Shown: positions 1,264 through 20,704 of the stretch, in pieces
Position numbering within the stretch: position 1 is the first letter of the stretch
Layout: each line of letters opens with the position of its first letter
From: Rhodosorus marinus CCMP1338
Taxonomy: Eukaryota; Plantae; Rhodophyta
Direction: 5' to 3'
Assembly: GCA_029953675.1 (NCBI GenBank)
Contig: JAMWBK010000003.1
Coordinates: 2,666,001 to 2,730,000 of the forward strand
Length of the DNA: 64,000 nucleotides
Program-made: the position numbers and the translations under genes
Notes under the pieces: model-generated
Databases searched by the model: none
What the model was told of the DNA's origin: nothing
The model's input: only the letters and a program-made list of their open reading frames with translations

Positions 1264-3346
1264 ATCTCTTTCAACACAATCCGAAGACAATCAGTCCTCA
1301 AGTTGTGGCAAATCTTAACCTCACTCGGAGACAACACCGAACCCAAGGAAGCCCTCTATACAGCAACAGAAAACCCCACATATATAGAATAAAATAGCTG
1401 TCATAAATATGTACAAAACAGTTCCGGCAACACACGCCAGTTGACGAAGACCTCAAAAATCACAAAAGCAAACACCACCAACTACAAAAGGAATCACACC
1501 GGCGTCCCACCAGAAAAACCTCCTCGATGGAGCGAATACAAAAGTAAACTCACTCCATTATCGATCAAGCGGGTGGCATGCATTGTTTATATTTCCATCT
1601 GCATTCTCAAAATTCTCCACCCTCAATATCCTCCACCTTCTCCGACCTCCCTCTACATGTGCGAGCTAAGAACTATCCCATCCACCCCTTTCTTTCCCTT
1701 GTGAAGCGAAAGTCGCGGTTCACCTTAAAAAAAACACGAAAAGAATCTGACTTAATTAAGAATTATCTAGAAATTCAACGTCGCATTGTTTCCTTAAATT
1801 TATATTTTGTATGTTTGCATCATAGTTTAGATCTGTTCGTTACAGATTCAGGAAGTTTAGGATAAGAGGAGCCGTAAGCTTTGTACGTCTTGAAAAGGGG
1901 AAGCGCAATGATCGGAACGGGTTTGGACAGGGAGAATCTCGTGGCACATTCGCTGCTGTCTTTGATGTCTGGCCCGCAGATTTACATCGGATATAAGTTT
2001 TCAAAATTGGAAGGTTCAGGAGATCGCCCTGGAGATGCGTGTATCATCGGCCACTCCTGAGTGTGGATCTTGGACCGCAGAGTTTTTGTACAAAAATGGA
2101 AGTGCTGGGTCGCGAAGAAGAAGACGACGTAACGGGATATGGGATCATCTCTGACGCACTTGAAGTGAAGTTTTTAAATGTATACAATGGATTGCTTACG
2201 ATCTGTCGAGCTTTGGACAGGTAAGCTCGTTCACAATGGCTCCGGCGGACCGGGTGGGACTGAAAATCCGGAACGACTTCCTACGTCAAGGGCTGCTCAG
2301 AGGTCTGGACCTTCTTCGTAGCCGTGATCCGACTGCTAGAACTCTGGATCTCGAGCTAGAGCGCCAGCTTCGGAGCGAGCTGAGAGAGCGGATAGCGGTT
2401 TTTGCTTGGCTGGTAAAAGAGAGAGAGTGATATACCGAGACATTTTAAGAGTCTTAGAGCAGCGTCCCTGACATACGTGGCCCTCTGTTATGGTGCGCAT
2501 CAGGATAAGGGTACAGTTCGTCTAGAGGAAGCTACGAACGCTCCCAGGAGTAAAGATCCAGAGTCCGCAGGAATTCTTGAAGAGGACGGCAACAGGGAGG
2601 CTGTAGATCTCCAACTCACAATCCTAGTGCGGGTACTGGATCAGAGCAGAAGTGTGGTCATCAGAAATGTCTAACAATAGCCTTTCGGGTTTGGCCTTCA
2701 CAGGAAGAGCCTTTAGTTTGTTCAGAGGAAGCTGCAGATGTTGCCAGTGCCAGCGAGCAGGAGCCTGCAGGGCACCTGCAGGATTGCACTTTTCACAAGG
2801 AAGATCTCCGTGCCATGAAGGAAGTATGTAGAATGACTTAGAGCCGAGAATATCGTCTGACATTTGTCTAATGTTCCTAATTCCCCCGGTAAGCTCTGCC
2901 TCCTTAACGGGAAGTTGTCAAAGATATACGAGAATCTGTCGAATCTTCACAAAAGGTTACAGAGCTCTAGCAAAGGAGAAGAGGAGCTGACTACGCCGAA
3001 AATTTCTCCTGTCTCTGAGCCGCGGGACCTGGAAACCACGGTACTATTTGCTCCACTGCATGCTGTACAGTTTAATAGTGGCAACACCGCCTGCTAACGT
3101 TTGCTATGTCCGGTCGTCATTGACCAATAATTACCCAAGTCCGGTACACCTTCTACTACGGTCAACGCCCATCAAGTTCCTGTTCGCAATTTGATTCAGA
3201 GGTTTGATGAGGTTTCGGTCTCAAGCAAGATGGACCGTCTCTTGACCCGCTTTGTTCAAAGCCAAGAACATTAGAGGCGATCTGTTCCGGGGGTTGTTCA
3301 AACTGGGGGCACAAGAACAAAACACGAGCCCCCCATTGGCAAATTA

Positions 3347-11762: not shown

Positions 11763-13599
11763 GGTTCAAAATCAGTTTCTTAACCCTTAGATCATACTAT
11801 CCTATTCCTTAATCACTATCATCCACCATCTCCCAATTCTCTCTCCACAAACCTTCCTCCTCCTGTACTGCGCCCAGTCTCTCCCTTTAAAAGGCCATCC
11901 ATGTATACATCCCCCATCTCAAAACCCCTAAATCACCCTCTCCCAAACCCAATCGTCAGCCAACAAAAAAAAAGTATGCAAAAGAGCTGATCAAGTCCAA
12001 TAATAATTTAAAAATGTACTTTCGAAAAAGTCCTCAAAATTATAAACTAAATTCAAATCGACAATTTCCCCTACTGTCCGAAAATCCCGTAGCAGAAAAT
12101 GAAAGAACTAAAAGCGGAGTGTCGTCAAAAGCCGATTGCAAAGCGCGGGCTGCTGAACCCCTGGAAATCTCTGTCACACCGGCCCCTTTCCCGTATTTTC
12201 AAAAGAAATTTGTTTTCTCGTCAATGAATAGAGAAGAAATGCCCGCTTAGTGGTTGTTCTTTTTTGGGGGGGTGGGGGGTTTGACGTTCCGCGGGAATAC
12301 GTTGTGTTTTTATAAGAAAATTGGGGTTAGGTATGTAAATTGGAAAAGAGAGAGAGAGCGCTATCATGATCTATTTAGTCAAACTGTCAGGAGGACATAA
12401 TTAAGAATAGTTATTCGTGTTTTGAAGTCATGAAGTCACATGGAATTTTGAGTTCGTGTCCGGGGCGGGGGGGGGAGGGGGCTTTGCTTTGCTTGGAAGG
12501 ATTCTTACTGGTTTCTGATCAGTCTCGTTGAGCAGTTTGACAATAAATCGTTTTTGGTCCATTAATATGGAGGGTTTTAAAACTCTTGTAAGGTAGAAAA
12601 GGGTAGAAAAATGGAGAACCATCTAGACATCTACACAGATCTAGTACAGAATGGAACTTGATTTAGACAATGCTTTCAGGTTAGCCCCAGTCGACTCTGT
12701 CGGCGACGGTAAGGTCTTGTTTTTACATGAAAAATGGAACAAAAAGGACAGAAACGATTGGTAGACGACTTGGAAACGCCGCCACCCTTTGGCCTGATGT
12801 CTGTTTCGTGGCTCGCGCGATACCCCATAAAATTTATTAAAACATGTATCTTACTCGAGCTTTTTTTAATAAAACAATGTGTAATTTTTGTTGATCTTTA
12901 TGGGGTGAGGGGGCCTTACAGTGCTCGTGCAAAGCAAGATTTGAAACATGAAAGCTTTTCTCGCGCTCTGAATAGCAAATTAATATGATTGGTTGATGGA
13001 ACGATCTATAGCCAATTATGGTATGTGAATTCCGTCACAGCTCATTGTATTTTGTGAAAAATAATGTAGGTTGGGCAAAAGCATTGTTGTTTCAATCATA
13101 ATTTTGGGGAAGCTCATAGCGCTCCCAGTTTACACTTTGGGCTATTTTGGTAATCTACGATATGATGAGGACATGATGCGGTTCATGGGCGAAGGGGAGA
13201 TTCAAAGTGTCAGGACTATTGAGGAGGGTGAAGCAGTGTTCGATGCAGCGTTCGAATGCTGCTTTGTTCTTGGACGCACGTCGTCGGCGTCTCCCTTTCC
13301 ACTCCTCCGGGTAAATGGGCGAGGCAAGATCTTGTTTTCCACTTGGACGGCTCTGTTCTGAGGACCTCCATAGTTTCGCATCCGACAATGTTATCTTGGA
13401 GGTTACTCTGTCAAGCCCATAATGTTTTAATCGACGTATGAAATCGAGTTCGTTGAGGAGTTTCCCTACGCTTATTTTTTTGATTGTGAACATAGGGCTA
13501 TCGAATTAGTTGTAGTTGACAGCGTCCTGAATGAGGAACATCCCGACAGTTTGGTTCTTGTCCAGCGGGCAGTTCAACAGTTGCTAGGGCTGCTCTCTC

Positions 13600-13760
13600 A
13601 ATTGTCCCGAGCAGTTCTCGCTGGATGCGAAACCGTGTCTTACGCTCAGTGAGCAGCTAGCCCCGCGTGAAGAAGGCCCTTTCCACGTCGCAGCCCTTGA
13701 CACGGCAAAGAGTTTTCCGGGCTAGAACGAGAAACTCATTTCGAAGTGAACAACCGCCTG
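13600..13760 (-). mobile_element. Degenerate hAT-family transposase C-terminal dimerisation-domain remnant
   Basis: Manual translation gives LVLARKTLCRVKGCDVERAFFTRG*LLTERKTRF, close to the hAT consensus LARxxLSxPATSxxxERxFSxxGxxxTxRRxRL, with an in-frame stop. Confidence 0.5.
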
Positions 13761-14454
13761 TCGCCGGATTGCACCTTTCGGTGAATGTAGATGTGTTTTC
13801 GAGGAGAATCTTCTCACGCCACGATTCTGGCTACATTTGCTGTGGATCTTGCAGGGCTTGTATGCTTGGTGGTGTTGCACCACGATTGGTGACAACCAGA
13901 GAAGATTCGCGCCGACGAATCGTTTTCTGATATGTGTGAACGGAGAGAAGGTGGAATTTCTGGCATTGTGTAAACCGTCACTGTCTGAGAATGGCTTTTA
14001 AAAGTACTCAGTGCTACAACAGCAAGTTTATTCCGTGAGCGAAAGCTAGCAACGGAGTCCGTAACCTTCGCGGCCTTACTCAGCCGTTCAGCCGGCATGA
14101 CCGGAGGTATTTGATGAAGACATTGCACCATTTTCCTATATGAGACTCGAGCACTTATTCTGAAGTGCTGAGAGTCGAACTAAACTGAGAATGCTTGCTG
14201 GAATGCAATATATCCACTGTCTCAATCTGCACGACCCAATCAAGTACAGAAGCTGGTGGGCAACAAGCGGGAAACTAGACTGTTCGGAACCATCCTGAAG
14301 GGTGATGTGAATAAGATTCGACTGGAATTGATACGGGATTGAGCGAGAAGTCAGTGTATGCTTTTCATCAAGGCGATTTCTCTTATCCTTCATCTGCGGA
14401 TCGACTCCAATGCCTATGATCAAAACGAGTTATTAAATTTACAGAGAAGTGGTC

Positions 14455-16076
14455 CTACAGCGGACTGGAAAAAGCGAGAGGTGGCGGGCCAGTTCTGCCG
14501 CCTAGTGCATCGACTATTACTCTAGTGTTGTATGCCATCATTCTTTGATAAGTTTCTGCCCCGCTCCCTGTGGTCATCCGTGCAATCGAAAACAGATATC
14601 ATGAGCAAACTGGTCCCGGTTTAAGCAATCCAAAGACTTAATCATACCTTCAGGACCAATAGAGTCAGAGTACAGACTTTCATCGCAGAGGTCAACATTT
14701 GCATCCTCCGCAACTGCTCGTATCAAGGTTGGGCTCACAGTCTTCTCAAAAAATACGACTGGTGGTTTTGCTAATCGTATTTCAGATATTAACTCCGACA
14801 TCATCTTCGCCGAGGGCTGTTCCTCTGTGTTGATTCCCATCAAAGTACCCAAAATCGTCAACCCATAAGCACGGGCGTAGTACTGAAACGCATCGTGAGT
14901 GGTCACAAGCATTCTCTTAGATTCCGGTACTGACTGAATGGATTTCTTGATCCACTGGTCCTAAAATGATCAAAACAGGATCGCAGTACTGTTCTTGAGC
15001 GAATGGTTGAACTTGAAGCGTGGAACGCGAACAAGGTCCATCGTGACATGCTCTTACCAGCTCTACGAGCTCCTTGTTCATTCTTCTTGCTCTCTTCAAG
15101 TAAATCTTGCCGTGTTCAGGATCGCACTCAGAAAAAGCGTCCGAGATTGCGTTCACCTGTTCATGGAATGTATGTTAGATCAAGGAGGTACTTGCTCGTA
15201 AGACTGAAGACCTCCGACTTTCCGGGACCGTACCATGCAGGCTGCATTCCTTGCGTCGTTCCACACGTGAGGATCTGGAGTGTCGGTTGATTCGCATGAT
15301 GGCATGGGCTCTACGCTTTCACCAACGGCGAACTGCTTGCATTGCTGCGTCGCATTATTTATCAGCGGCATGAGATTCATTTCTAGGTCAAATCCGTTAT
15401 ACAAGATGATATCGGCCTTTTCAATGCGTATCTGTCCGTAGGTTCATCAACATTCCCCGTCAGAGCTTTTCCAGGTTGCCGCACTTTGGACTTCCAGCCA
15501 CTTACCGAGTCAGTAGGAACGGGCTCGTACACGTGAGGATCATCTCCAGGTTGAATAATGCCAGTAATAGAAAGAAAATCTCCCGCGATACACTTTGCCA
15601 AGTCAGTAATTATCGATGTGGTTGTTATCACGTCCAACTAAACCAAGAATACATAGACAGAAAAAACCTTCTTAAGTTTTGAAAATCTCCAAATGGGGCT
15701 CTCGTCGTTCCGAAGGCACAAAATATAACTGGCGCCTATAGGCCCTAGCCGGTGGCACTTGTCCTCCAGGTTAATACTTAAAACTTTGCGCCTGCCTGCC
15801 TCTACTATCCCCAATATGGCAAGGATTTCGCATTCGCTGGGAGGGCTGGTGTACCTTTTTCGTCGGTTCGAGGGGAACGGCCGCCGGCAAGCGAAATACT
15901 TCATCTCCTCCAAAATACCCATCCCCGTCGCCTCTCCCTCTCCCAAAATTGTTCAGTCCTCCCCCACCTCCCCCACCCTCAGCACACAAACGATGAACCC
16001 TTTCCCTTTTTAAAGACCGTTGTTGCAGTGATCTGTTCCCCAAAACCCCACCCAACGCGAAACCAGGTAAAGACAT
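14455..16076 (-). CDS. TroA/MntC/ZnuA-family ABC metal (Mn/Zn) substrate-binding protein with plastid-transit-like N-terminus, 6 exons, about 358 aa
   Basis: Exons at about 16076-15855, 15637-15506, 15431-15234, 15156-15058, 14960-14648 and 14567-14455 join in frame at canonical splice sites. Motifs: VITTTSIITD, DPHVYEP, YNGFDLE, DPHVWND, VTTHDAFQYY, EEQPSAK, LYSDSIG, TYQRMMAYNT. Confidence 0.92.
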
Positions 16077-17899
16077 CGTAAAAGCGAGGAATCCCAACCA
16101 CAATACAGCCAAAAAAAAACACCAAAACAAGGAAAAGAACCTCAATAGATTAACACAAGCCGTCAAACCTCACGCATGCGTTCTCCAAGCCCTTTCAGCC
16201 CGAACAGGAAACAAACCTCAAAGAACCCAACGCACCCAGGCCCTAAAACCCAAGACTCTAGGCCCGAACAGAAAAAAAAAAGCCCCTCGACGAAACCCAA
16301 CGACACCCAAGCCCCACCCGAACATATACCAAAAGCCAAAATTTTCCTCCCTGCTCGAGCAAATTCAAGATGCTCTGGAAGAAGTACGTGATCTCTTCTT
16401 CAATACTGCGCTCTCGAAAAGCTACCCTCAAGCATCCCTACTATTCCCCGTCCCAGAACTCTGTGAAGCTGGCACCACTCTATTGCAGCATTTCATCCGT
16501 TGACACCGACCAATTTCGATCCCCTACATCAATCACATCGTCCATTGCAACACGCAAAAGACAATTAAGGACCAATCTCATAATTAAGCCAAAGTAATTT
16601 GCCCAGGGGTATTCTAAAATCAATACAATATTATTTCACTATAATAGAAAATTTTATGGACATGTCTTGCAGTCCATCCTTCCCCCCTGGAGCTCAATGA
16701 GTATCAGCCAAATCTTATTTTATAAAATAGCTTCATAATTATCGAAATATACCCCAAATTACGCCGGTTTTTGAGGTTTCGGGTTCCTAGAAGGGTTCCC
16801 TGAAGAGGAGCCACAGCTTTTTAGTTTTTCGATTTGTGAGGAACGGAGGTAATCATGACGAATACGAAGATTTTTTTAGTTTTTTACAAATACCAACGGG
16901 CCATGTCTCGGTTTCGAGGTAGAATGGGGCATGGAGAGAGTGGCGTTGAGCTCCGGGCCCGTTTTGTTTTTTAATTATATATGTCCTGCAAGGATCTTTT
17001 TCGTCTTCTAAACTGGGGGTGGGCTTTAGGAGGCTGGCACGAGAAAAGGAGCTAGAGCAATCAAAAAATGAGGTGGGGTAAGGGAAAAAGTAGAAATTCT
17101 TCTCCACCCGACGAAAATGCGTTTTGCGGCCACTTAATCTCAAATGAGTCAAAAGCAAAATCTCCTCTCTTTCCTCCAAAAAAAACGCCGGCTGCTTTCT
17201 CTCTACCTCTCGAGGAAGGAGTTAAAAATATCGTCCTTTGCTTTGCTCCGCATGATTTTCCTAGCCAGAGGATAGGCCATGAGATCTTCAAATTCACCTT
17301 TATGACCTCCCCCCTAGTTTGGATTTTAGTCCCTACAATTTTTTTTTGAAATGTAGTAACCTCAACCCGGTCCCCATGCTGCCGAGTTCTTCCAAGGGGT
17401 AGAGCTTGCCTTGTGGAACAGTTCTGAGCTAGTTCCTTCTAGTACGCGTCCTGGCAAAGAGGAGGACAGGGGTACGAATTGGGTGAAGATGTAATCCAAA
17501 ATATGTGTGCATAGGAAGTCTTCCTTGTTAGTTATGACATTTCAAGAGAATGCGCTTTTTTCTTCTTTTTTTTTCTCCAACCCACAATCGCTGGCGGATG
17601 GCGCAATGCTCTTTTTGCAATTTTTGCTGTCGAATTATAATAATAATTAAAAATATATTTGAACCAATGATGTATCGCATAGATATTCACGTTCTAAATT
17701 TCTATATATATATTTCAGGTACCCATTCTTTTTTTTGCATATTCTGATTTATAACGAATTAACACCTGCCGCGTGTCGAAGATCGAATCCATGAGCTCAA
17801 TTGATGTGGTTGTTGTATTGTCCAACCAATCCACAAACGTCACGAGCTTCCGAGTTGTTAGTCTTCTCCAAACATGAAAAAAAAAAAACTTCAGCAGGC

Positions 17900-19000
17900 T
17901 ATGGACCAATTAATGAACCGGTTAGCAGCAGTAGATTGGTTTCTGCAGCGCAAAAACTGAATGTCAACGGCCTCGGCTTTGCAGTCACACATTTTTGTTC
18001 TTGGTATGGCAGGCAGAGAAAGTCTTCGCCCTCGGACATAACGCACCAAACTGGACAGTTCAATCTGGGATGAAGTGCGTGAATTGTTGCACAAGGTTGC
18101 TTCAGCGGTAGGTCGGACGTGACTGTCCTTCCCACGCATTCATGCCGGGAAGTCGGAAAGGTCCGTGTATCTGAGGGTTAGCAATTCCACGGCGAGCGCT
18201 TCTCGATGATTGATTGAATGAAGACTGCAAAATTGATCGGCTTACGGCTCTCAACTCAGTCTCACATCTCCGTCTCTCTGCAGCTCACGTAAAAACGGTT
18301 TCCTTCAAGCACGCGCCGAGCAACGGATACTAGTGGTAAGCGAGGGCGTTTGCTTGTAGATGGTTCGAAAACCGCGTGCAAATATTTCAAGAACGGGGAC
18401 TGCGTCACTCAGCAAAGGCATTCTACTCCTCAAGAGTAAGTTTGATCAGCAGCGCTTTGCAATGAAGGGCTGGGTAGACTTGGTTCGGCGACAGGTCGTA
18501 TTTCGCCGAAATTGGAGGGACCGCATCCAGCGAAGGAAGCACTGACACCAATCGGACCAGGAATTGCAGCAAGAAGCCCTGAGAGACGTTGTCTGCGAGG
18601 GGGCACAATCCAAAAAAACACATCTGCACCCGGAGTGAGGTTTCATGAAACCATCGCAGGTCGACAATATAGTGCCGCTCGGCGATACGAGCTCGGAACC
18701 CTCTTGAACTACAGATCACAGTCTCCACGGCAGAGCAACAGTCAGCAGATCAGATATCTCCGCAGCCAGGACCATAGTCAGACCTTCAATTAGCCATCTT
18801 ACCAAGTCCGGCACCCTCGTGTATCCATTTACCGTGCCCGCCGACCGAGCCTTAATCAAGAAGCCATTTCTTCCTAAACATTTGAATTTCAAAATATCAG
18901 CAAAAGAACTTCAGGGTGACCTTCATGATAACGGTCGTCCCACCTAACCCCTATCCCCATTCTGTAATTCGTAAATCACTCTCCTGTGCTCCTAAAACAT
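17900..19000 (-). CDS. Possible unidentified multi-exon gene divergent from ftsZ
   Basis: Coding-like GC content, several gtaag donors and ctgac...ag acceptors, and open segments such as GRNGFLIKARSAGTVNGYTRVPDL and TVICSSRGFRARIAERHY. I could not build a unique gene model or recognise a family. Confidence 0.3.
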
Positions 19001-19454
19001 CCAATTCGTCGCCCATCTGCGCACTCTCCACCACGGTGGCAATATTGACCTAATGGTTCTTAGAGCGATTAGATACAGGCCCCCTTCTTTTGCGCCAATT
19101 TGCAAGGAGTTTGCAAACAAAAAAGGCTCTTTTTCTGTTTAGACAATTTTAGAAACCGGATTTTCTTAAACTAGTATTTGGCCAAGAACTAAATGGGAGT
19201 GCAGATTTTTTTGCGCGAAATTCTGCCAGAAAGAGTGTTTTGGGGTAGGGGGGGATTGTGATTTGGGATATCTGAGCTTGGGAAAATGTAATGGCGCGGA
19301 GTTTCGTGTTTTTTTTTTTGTCTTGTGTGGTTTGGTTGATGTAGAGGATGGAGCTGATGTGGGAGGCAAGGACGTGAGAGGTGACTTGTGGGGGGGAGAG
19401 GGATTTTTTGAGAAGCAAGTTTTATGACGGGGTTGTTTGGAAGGAACGAACGCA

Positions 19455-20704
19455 ATGGGATTTGTGCTTAGTGGGGTGTTCAGTCATCCTGGATTGAGCC
19501 GGAGATGCCGATCGTCGTCGAGTCGATCGGGCCCAGTTTTCATGACGCTTGAATCTCCGCCCTGTTCTATTAAGGTGATCGGGGTTGGAGGTGCAGGTGG
19601 GAACGCGGTGACGAGAATGCTGGAATCCGGCTTGGACTCCGTGGAGTTCCTCTGCGCAAACACCGACTTTCAGGCACTGTCCCTGTTCAAGGAAACCCCC
19701 GGGGTTGGAAAGCGTAGGGTCATTCAGCTCGGTGAGGATACGTGCCGAGGTCTAGGTGCGGGTGGCGAACCCGCAGTCGGAAAACAGGCGGCTGAGGAAT
19801 CCAAGTCAGATATTGCGAAATCTCTGTCTGGGGGTGATCTTGTTTTTATTACTGCGGGAATGGGCGGTGGCACTGGAACAGGCGCAGCCCCCGTAGTGGC
19901 CTCGGTGAGCGCGAATATCCTCTCCGGAGATCAGCCTTTCAGCTCGTCTTTGCTAGGGGTACGCATGCGTAGCCTTGGAATGCTGATCCGACCCTCTGGT
20001 CTATGACATTGCAGGTAGCAAAGGAACTTGGTTGTCTCACGGTTGGAGTCGTGACAAAGCCGTTCATGTTTGAGGGACGGAGGAGAATGTCACAGGGAAA
20101 CCGAGGCCTTGAAGATCTGAGAGACGCTGTTGATACGCTGATTGTCGTTTCAAATGATAAGCTATTGGAGACAATCCCAAAGAACACGCCTTTGTCTGAC
20201 GCGTTTTCAGTCGCGGATGATGTCTTGAGGCAAGGTGTCAGCGGTATTTCTGACATCATTCTTCGTCCGGGTCTAGTCAACGTCGATTTTGCAGACGTCA
20301 AGTCGGTTATGGAGGAAAAGGGATACGCACTGCTTGGTATCGGGTTCGGTACTGGGGACAGTAGAGCCAAGCAAGCAGCTACTAACGCTATTGCCAGTCC
20401 TCTTCTCGACTTCCCGCTTACGTCCGCAAAGGGAGCAGTCTTCAACGTGAAGGGCGGGAGTGACATGACCTTAGCTGAGGTAACGTTCGTTCCATTTATC
20501 TAACCTGCTTCAGGGGACGATGCTCCTGACGACATCGAGAACCAACCTCTGCGTGCTTTTTTTTGCATCACCTAGGTAAACGCTGCGGCGGAGGTAATCT
20601 ACGACAGTTTGGATGCGGACGCAAACATTATTTTCGGTGCACTGGTAGATAAAGAGTACGAAGGGACTATCAGTGTTACCGTGGTCGCAACTGGATTCCA
20701 GTAA
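19455..20704 (+). CDS. ftsZ: Plastid division protein FtsZ, 3 coding exons, lacking the C-terminal core peptide
   Basis: [21 protein letters not shown] tubulin signature and NVDFAD T7 loop. Introns 19905-20014 and 20480-20575. The last exon [25 protein letters not shown]...VTVVATGFQ* ends the protein. Transit peptide begins MGFVLS. Confidence 0.97.

Follow-up and report, generated by a model that had tools for sequence, protein, structure and literature searches.

ATP-binding cassette (ABC) importers that depend on a binding protein are usually viewed as a prokaryotic speciality, and manganese import into plant plastids is credited to UPF0016 proteins. The green-algal chloroplast sulfate ABC transporter (SulP/SulP2/Sabc/Sbp) is of cyanobacterial origin and resides in the plastid envelope; its cysA/cysT genes are plastid-encoded in some lineages. 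Here we describe a gene of the red alga Rhodosorus marinus CCMP1338, located at 14455-16076 on the reverse strand of a 64,000-nucleotide stretch of genomic DNA (referred to as the window), the product of which belongs to the ZnuA/TroA family of metal-binding proteins. We lean, if only slightly, towards regarding it as the soluble binding subunit of a cyanobacterium-derived Zn2+ and/or Mn2+ ABC importer whose genes are split between plastid and nucleus. Like the sulfate transporter, this would be a binding-protein-dependent importer with subunit genes divided between the two genomes; the sulfate transporter differs in being a type I family member, in the class of its binding protein and in belonging to the green lineage.

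Plastid-encoded components of the same kind of cyanobacterial system as the one proposed here have been described. Cyanophora plastomes carry mntA and mntB (PMC6330054), and in Porphyridium purpureum the plastid mntA of every strain is interrupted by a group II intron (PMC4476101). Neville et al. 2021 reported 12 plastid ABC-3 (PF00950) sequences; these permeases are encoded by "several glaucophyte and rhodophyte" plastomes, where no binding protein is encoded (PMC8346216). The absence of the latter puzzled these authors, who suggested that the mechanism might differ (PMC8346216). Taken together, the three reports bear out the first-pass annotation of the window, which had placed mntA and mntB, with reserve, in some glaucophyte and unicellular red-algal plastomes. 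Plastid mntA and mntB, the presumed partners, stayed in the organelle, whereas the window gene is nuclear. It probably encodes the binding subunit reported missing from the metal ABC transporter of some red-algal plastomes.

Rebuilt by reading and by script, the gene comprises six exons with a coding sequence of 1077 nt (358 amino acids and stop codon). Its five introns (217, 74, 77, 97 and 80 nt) all have GT..AG borders. The product is letter-for-letter identical with KAJ8907064.1 (P0242 in our set), "hypothetical protein NDN08_003547 [Rhodosorus marinus]", which belongs to a UniRef cluster named "Zinc ABC transporter substrate-binding protein", and window positions 13455-17076 match JAMWBK010000003.1:2679455-2683076 of assembly GCA_029953675.1 with 100% identity. 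All five splice junctions are confirmed by full-length, 358-residue MMETSP transcripts from other R. marinus strains (P0245 and P0249, approximately 92% identity), and spliced transcripts of the gene are known from three strains. Exon 1 (15855-16076, residues 1-74), supported by these two transcripts and in keeping with the confidence profile of the structural model described below, contains the entire N-terminal extension and ends at Lys-Lys before the mature domain. Intron 1 (15638-15854, 217 nt, GT..AG), which separates this presequence exon from the binding domain, is spliced in all transcripts, confirming that the two are joined in the message. The six-exon TroA/MntC-family gene proposed in the first-pass annotation is hence a real, expressed nuclear gene, and the coordinates given there coincide exactly with the limits of the coding sequence.

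Some R. marinus transcript isoforms read into introns. P0001 continues into intron 5 (14568-14647; ...GPEGMIMSMDCLCA), and P0003 into intron 4 (14961-15057; ...LVELVRDFRDEP...). The cluster of transcript assemblies, which has 12 members, also includes many short fragments. Transcripts of this gene seem often to retain introns or to be incompletely spliced.

Residues 77-342 match the Pfam profile ZnuA (PF01297) over its whole length (1-263 of 263, E=5.1e-77), and residues 75-345 make up a complete cluster A-I metal-binding domain. The best relatives of known structure are Synechocystis MntC, PsaA, MtsA, AztC, TroA and YfeA, with about 30-34% identity and E values of 1e-37 to 1e-45. An AlphaFold2 model, computed from 14 sequences, consists of two beta-alpha lobes joined by a long connecting helical element (helices 178-195 and 197-226). 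The predicted local distance difference test (pLDDT) score is mostly 85-97 in the domain and below 50 at residues 1-70. Foldseek target-normalised TM-scores of the model to MntC, TroA and AztC are 0.90-0.93.

All four metal-ligand motifs named in the first-pass annotation are present, and their positions correspond to those of the ligand motifs in MntC, TroA and PsaA. His109 (DPHVY, codon 15535-15533) lies in exon 2 (15506-15637, residues 75-118), where the mature domain begins. Exon 3 (15234-15431, residues 119-184) encodes His173 (DPHVW, codon 15269-15267) together with an NGxxLE motif, and exon 4 (15058-15156, residues 185-217) the first portion of the long inter-lobe helix of the model. 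The remaining two ligands, His239 (THDAF, codon 14897-14895) and Asp316 (YSDS, codon 14666-14664), are found in exon 5 (14648-14960, residues 218-322, phase 1 at its 3' end), as is a TEEQPSA motif. Exon 6 (14455-14567, residues 322-358 and stop) encodes the final helix; its junction is supported by transcripts P0245, P0249, P0002 and P0004-P0008. His109, His173, His239 and Asp316 are invariant across 14 aligned red-algal and cyanobacterial sequences, and the same is true for the NGxxLE and TEEQPSA motifs, located at the lobe tips, in red-algal and cyanobacterial relatives. Mean column identity among red-algal mature domains is 78%, which points to purifying selection.

Two features are peculiar to the red-algal proteins. 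A single cysteine, Cys309 (14685-14687, exon 5), lies in an L-C-(D/E)-E-S context and is invariant in red-algal orthologues, the cyanobacterial residue being alanine. A C-terminal P-x-P-L-A-(F/W) tail (14458-14484, exon 6; PxPLAF in R. marinus) occurs in all red-algal orthologues and is missing from cyanobacterial relatives. Both might be signs of a newly gained interaction in the plastid or of a new mode of regulation there.

To judge from the aligned residues, the metal site is of the His3Asp type, as in Treponema pallidum TroA and Paracoccus denitrificans AztC, and unlike the His/His/Glu/Asp site of MntC. His/His/Glu/Asp sites accompany manganese or iron; among His3Asp proteins, TroA binds zinc and manganese, and AztC zinc. 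The window protein resembles TroA and AztC in fold, in all four ligand positions, with histidine as the third ligand, and in the absence of a long His-rich loop; the "HDAF" and "SD" of TroA align with THDAF and YSDS. Identity to the two proteins amounts to 32-34%, and the window protein, unlike them, is eukaryotic, nuclear-encoded and intron-containing, bears a plastid-type presequence in place of a signal peptide and has no adjoining transporter genes. Synechocystis sp. PCC 6803 MntC, the cluster A-I protein of the cyanobacterial Mn importer MntCAB, is the top PDB match both by sequence (E ~4e-45) and by fold, and the proposal of the first-pass annotation was modelled on it. It has Glu (SCEGAF) where the window protein has His239 (TTHDAF), along with an adjacent redox-disulfide cysteine; the third ligand of PsaA is likewise Glu.

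The top NCBIfam model, AztC (NF040870), scores 230.1 bits, below its cut-off of 350, so that the protein is not an AztC equivalog, and no other model meets its own cut-off. For NCBIfam ZnuA (NF007091), the score is 69.6 bits, obtained on the C-lobe alone and below the cut-off of 268 bits. No His-rich loop characteristic of ZnuA is found, residues 140-172, located between the lobes and ahead of the ligand His173, being free of histidine; together with the low model score, this rules out ZnuA proper.

Homologues were surveyed across 5.8 billion proteins by a single-sequence search and by a profile search built from red-algal mature domains. Seven or eight eukaryotic clusters outscore everything else, with 486-574 bits in the profile search. 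More than 100 bits below them come cyanobacterial proteins, hundreds in number and approximately 50% identical, and every named non-eukaryotic top match in both searches is cyanobacterial. The orthologues come from R. marinus strains, from an MMETSP relative (P0002/P0252, 81% identical), from Porphyridium purpureum (P0005) and Compsopogon caeruleus (P0008), and from transcriptomes (P0004, P0006 and P0007); three red-algal classes are represented. Neither search retrieved an orthologue from glaucophytes, the green lineage, secondary-plastid algae, bangiophytes, florideophytes or cyanidiophytes. The P. purpureum gene is intronless and located among kinase, PI3/4-kinase and EFTUD2 genes. The 3.2-kb contig carrying P0004 (L008, JGI 3300016707 Ga0186417_100994) contains a second open reading frame of 544 amino acids on the opposite strand (1598-3232, reverse), so that it must be genomic or else a chimeric transcript.

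To estimate the origin of the gene, a bootstrapped neighbour-joining tree was constructed from 295 columns of 9 red-algal, 26 cyanobacterial and 4 outgroup sequences, a limited sampling. Red-algal sequences are monophyletic (200/200 replicates), as is the group uniting them with the cyanobacterial ones (200/200), within which the cyanobacteria sampled are sister to the red algae (194/200). Synechocystis MntC, with 33% identity to the window protein, is a distant outgroup to this clade. The topology is compatible with one ancient acquisition of the gene from a cyanobacterium. The sampling does not allow us to tell whether the gene came from the plastid ancestor and was then lost from other lineages or arrived by a later transfer. 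By tree and ligand set, the window protein is a member of a distinct cyanobacterial clade, uncharacterised and with a His3Asp site, and orthology with Synechocystis MntC is ruled out. The first-pass annotation had suggested that the gene may encode the relocated binding subunit of a cyanobacterial MntABC system and proposed a phylogeny of the mature domain. The nuclear location, the introns and the cyanobacterial origin hold, and orthology with MntC does not. Since the protein falls into a separate clade and has a His3Asp site, the assignment to manganese is not established; as far as the sequence can tell, which is not enough to decide, zinc is at least as likely a ligand as manganese.

We examined the surroundings of cyanobacterial orthologues in the distantly related Acaryochloris, Sphaerospermopsis, Desertifilum and Gloeocapsopsis. 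In all four loci the gene divergently adjoins an ABC ATPase gene, followed by a gene for an ABC-3 (PF00950) permease. Cyanobacterial relatives further carry a lipoprotein signal with an L-x-x-C lipobox. Linkage and lipobox together identify the donor protein as the periplasmic component of a conventional importer made up of three parts. The arrangement differs from that of Synechocystis mntCAB, a co-directional operon, in that the binding-protein gene is divergent from the ATPase-permease pair.

The divergent promoter of the cyanobacterial loci shows conservation of a direct repeat, AATGAAA-N4/5-(A/T)ATGAAAA, which as a rule occurs twice at a distance of about 30 bp (locus L003, 5827-6000; L005, 3911-4000; L006, 3916-4000; L007, 3814-4000). 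Direct repeats spaced by approximately one helical turn suggest a response-regulator operator, perhaps ManR-like, and not the palindrome of a Fur/Zur box. Such an operator, if confirmed, would be relevant to the identity of the metal transported.

Porphyridium purpureum is a species in which both halves of the proposed system meet, since its nuclear orthologue occurs beside the plastid mntA and ABC-3 genes reported in the literature. This coincidence is most simply read as relocation of the binding protein to the nucleus rather than its loss. According to the scheme we favour, the binding-protein gene would have been transferred to the nucleus, where it gained spliceosomal introns and exchanged its lipoprotein signal for a plastid presequence of the phenylalanine type. 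The ATPase (mntA) and the ABC-3 permease (mntB) would have remained plastid-encoded, in Porphyridium at any rate; for R. marinus itself, plastid partners are presumed by analogy.

The location of the protein is suggested by its N-terminus. No lipobox cysteine or Sec signal is present there; as the first-pass annotation had read it, an extension including GGGGGGG takes the place of the lipoprotein signal. This extension is non-hydrophobic, comprises 73 residues in Rhodosorus and 78-109 in other orthologues, and is predicted to be disordered. In Rhodosorus it consists of a basic start with Phe6, a run of seven glycines (residues 34-40) and a Gly/Asp-rich GRGRGDGDG tract. A phenylalanine near the N-terminus, followed by a basic, hydroxylated and non-hydrophobic region, is an established characteristic of transit peptides in rhodophytes and glaucophytes. 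The window protein and its orthologues display this pattern: phenylalanine occurs at position 4-7 in seven of eight orthologues, and the net charge of the first 30 residues is 0 to +8 across orthologues and +4 to +7 in three Rhodosorus sequences. Plastid targeting of the window protein is thus likely on the strength of its sequence.

The one exception to the phenylalanine rule is the Porphyridium orthologue, probably owing to a mis-called start. In frame upstream of its annotated ATG, the sequence reads ...GVGFVGNAGCGLAG..., which resembles MSLPGFALGGVLG of Rhodosorus. In the genomic locus (L004, 9900-10000; VRMN01000007.1), this upstream sequence, read as ...GGVGFVGNAGCGLAGVG..., is similar to the beginnings of the Rhodosorus and P0252 presequences, with no ATG before it. 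The start is therefore unlikely to be annotated correctly, and a 5' exon may have been overlooked.

The basic start is followed in orthologues by a low-complexity tract rich in Gly, Asp and Arg, or in Asn (GRGRGDGDG in Rhodosorus, GRGSGRGDGDGGGGD in Porphyridium), and by a short, weakly to moderately hydrophobic patch directly ahead of the mature domain. The polyglycine run itself (Gly34-Gly40, 15957-15977, reverse strand) is encoded by GGT GGG GGA GGT GGG GGA GGA, i.e. by a 9-nt unit, GGTGGGGGA, present twice and followed by GGA, and so looks like a product of replication slippage. It is the only run of at least five glycines among six-frame open reading frames of at least 80 amino acids in the window. 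R. marinus strains vary at this site (G7, G7 and CCGGGGG). Seven or five consecutive glycines are found in Rhodosorus, and four in P0252, P0004 and Porphyridium. The element conserved among orthologues is a flexible spacer rich in Gly and Asp or in Asn, and not polyglycine as such.

PolyGly-dependent sorting, invoked in the first-pass annotation, is documented for Toc75. The land-plant Toc75 presequence is bipartite, consisting of the n75 transit peptide and of c75, which comprises a hydrophobic domain and polyglycine and is cleaved by Plsp1; in the pea protein, polyglycine bars entry into the stroma (PMC5147994). Even a soluble passenger, the Rubisco small subunit, was left at the intermembrane space of pea chloroplasts when polyglycine was attached (PMC5147994). 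The window extension resembles this presequence in that a transit-peptide-like start is followed by a polyglycine run. It differs from it in the order of elements, polyglycine preceding the weak hydrophobic patch, in the length of the run (seven residues vs about 10-20) and in its absence from some orthologues.

Topology of the proposed importer can be derived from its plastid-made part. As the ATPase would face the stroma, a working binding protein would have to be located on the opposite face of the membrane. Two compartments come into question for such a protein, the envelope intermembrane space and the thylakoid lumen. Of these, the intermembrane space, which matches the former periplasm, would be the most sensible location, as metal destined for the stroma is more plausibly taken in across the envelope. 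There the metal would be captured at His109, His173, His239 and Asp316, handed to the permease and imported into the stroma at the expense of ATP. The Gly-rich acidic tract behind the transit peptide may halt full translocation of the protein into the stroma. Residence in the intermembrane space, deduced from the topology of the partners, and its attainment by means of polyglycine appear to us a reasonable idea. The full version of the scheme, in which Rhodosorus, Porphyridium and Compsopogon algae keep a complete split-genome envelope metal importer with the soluble subunit parked by a Toc75-like, Gly-rich "rejection" segment, is a tentative one, and we would rather doubt it than rely on it.

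Several points weigh against the split importer or against its proposed sorting. The link to plastid mntA and mntB comes from the literature on Porphyridium and not from sequences examined in this analysis. No Cyanophora orthologue was found in the profile search, though the Cyanophora plastome has mntA and mntB, and the "mnt" (manganese) label of the plastid genes does not match the His3Asp site of the window protein. As to sorting, polyglycine is absent from Compsopogon and P0006, the latter having poly-Asn instead. Its function is known for land-plant Toc75 (pea and Arabidopsis) alone and was considered by the authors as apparently unique to this protein (PMC5147994); no demonstration of the mechanism is known from red algae or with a native soluble protein. 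Finally, several orthologues possess a moderately hydrophobic stretch with an AxA-like site before the mature domain, which also fits sorting into the thylakoid lumen. Also counting against the split importer, no ABC-3 permease or ATPase was detected in the 64-kb window at E < 0.9 by tblastn with Acaryochloris queries.

The lack of such a neighbour would agree with an orphan binding protein that no longer docks to an ABC permease and serves as a soluble metal chaperone, buffer or sensor in the stroma or in another compartment. In diatoms, FBP1, a FhuD-like binding protein of bacterial type, operates with no ABC partner. The partner permease was also sought elsewhere. With a cyanobacterial permease as query against the 5.8-billion-protein database, the matches listed (at least 120) all share at least 72% identity, and every named one is cyanobacterial, the listing being crowded with cyanobacterial sequences. 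When the same permease was used in a HMMER search of a library of 50%-identity representatives, the nameable matches among 20 looked up were all bacterial (Prochlorococcus, Timaviella, Anthocerotibacter, Verrucomicrobiota and permease-DtxR fusions); matches with N-terminal extensions, long fusions, AT-rich-looking sequences and shortened sequences were inspected. No eukaryotic ABC-3 protein was found among the top-scoring representative clusters inspected, where a plastid permease of more than 50% identity would hide inside a cyanobacterial cluster. Against an orphan stands the plastid ABC-3 and mntA reported in the same red-algal group, where nothing else would supply the binding protein. Moreover, the NGxxLE and TEEQPSA motifs at the lobe tips, common to partnered cyanobacterial proteins, are strictly conserved. 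We therefore hold loss of the partnership to be rather unlikely. The motif GDAISHSVLPG, considered for a degenerate-DNA scan of metagenome contigs, is common to AT-rich bacteria and was dropped.

The second alternative, to which we assign a still lower probability, is a thylakoid-lumen protein with a bipartite presequence composed of a transit peptide and a degenerate cyanobacterial signal peptide. It would act there in metal buffering or delivery, for example of manganese for photosystem II, or serve a thylakoid transporter. In a MAFFT alignment, the hydrophobic stretches of P0004 (MFMWITLFTW...ARA/EE), P0005 (AWMLLPAFAAA/GG) and P0006 (YFLPILLPIVAPSPSNA/S) coincide with the cyanobacterial h-region, and the AxA-like sites behind them (slashes) favour a lumenal destination. 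The Rhodosorus stretch is weak, however, with Kyte-Doolittle means over 11 residues of 0.8-2.0 compared with 2.25-3.0 for cyanobacterial signals, and it includes Arg and Pro; in Compsopogon the stretch is absent (0.2). The region ahead of it is acidic and not basic as in Sec or Tat signals. An ATPase facing the stroma would, besides, draw metal out of the lumen, which would make little sense for supply of photosystem II.

Metal scavenging at the cell surface or elsewhere, with the N-terminus acting as a weak secretory or mitochondrial signal, would find some support in the first 13 residues (MSLPGFALGGVLG), which are mildly hydrophobic. Their hydrophobicity is far under that of real signal peptides, and phenylalanine at position 4-7 with a basic, Ser/Arg-rich continuation conforms to the rhodophyte and glaucophyte transit-peptide pattern. 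The N-terminus also resembles that of FtsZ, a plastid-division protein encoded in the same window, which starts with MGFVLSGVF... and is of the phenylalanine type as well. A destination outside the plastid is accordingly quite improbable. Bacterial contamination or a very recent horizontal transfer without organellar role, for which only the typically bacterial nature of the domain would speak, can be dismissed, given five spliceosomal GT..AG introns, the location among eukaryotic genes of a 3.35-Mb contig, spliced transcripts in three strains and orthologues forming one clade in three red-algal classes.

With these alternatives weighed, the split plastid-nuclear importer is the reading we retain. 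The gene itself is already known, being deposited in GenBank and UniProt, and its protein family is well understood; what is new is that this nuclear gene can be tied to the binding protein described as "missing" from plastid ABC-3 transporters. We did not find this tie stated in the searchable literature, nor any paper there that links a ZnuA/MntC-type binding protein to red algae. The value lies hence in a connection between two genomes and not in a new kind of molecule. A conserved, expressed nuclear orthologue with a presequence offers a simple answer to the puzzle of Neville et al. 2021 and makes the question testable, and such an orthologue was found in Porphyridium, the same red alga whose plastid mntA is documented. 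The protein is a natural candidate cargo for studying delivery of soluble proteins to the intermembrane space of primary plastids, for which few examples exist. If Gly-rich sorting proves true, it would be the first native soluble protein, and red algae the first non-green lineage, shown to use a Toc75-like principle.

The remainder of the window is ordinary eukaryotic nuclear DNA. Genes in the neighbourhood encode Med14, a Ser/Thr kinase, FtsZ, an AMPK-beta carbohydrate-binding module, a C2H2 finger protein, TELO2, a CCT-motif protein, phosphoesterases and a JAB/MPN protein. ARAGORN detected no tRNA genes in 1-64000, and no tandem repeats were found in 12000-19000. GC content is 42-53% across 1-64000, without a compositional island at the binding-protein gene, which argues against recent foreign insertion. 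The ftsZ gene (19428-20500, forward strand) is nuclear, encodes Tubulin/FtsZ GTPase and FtsZ_C domains and consists of at least two exons, split around 20000. It is a second gene of cyanobacterial origin in the window, 3.5 kb from the binding-protein gene.

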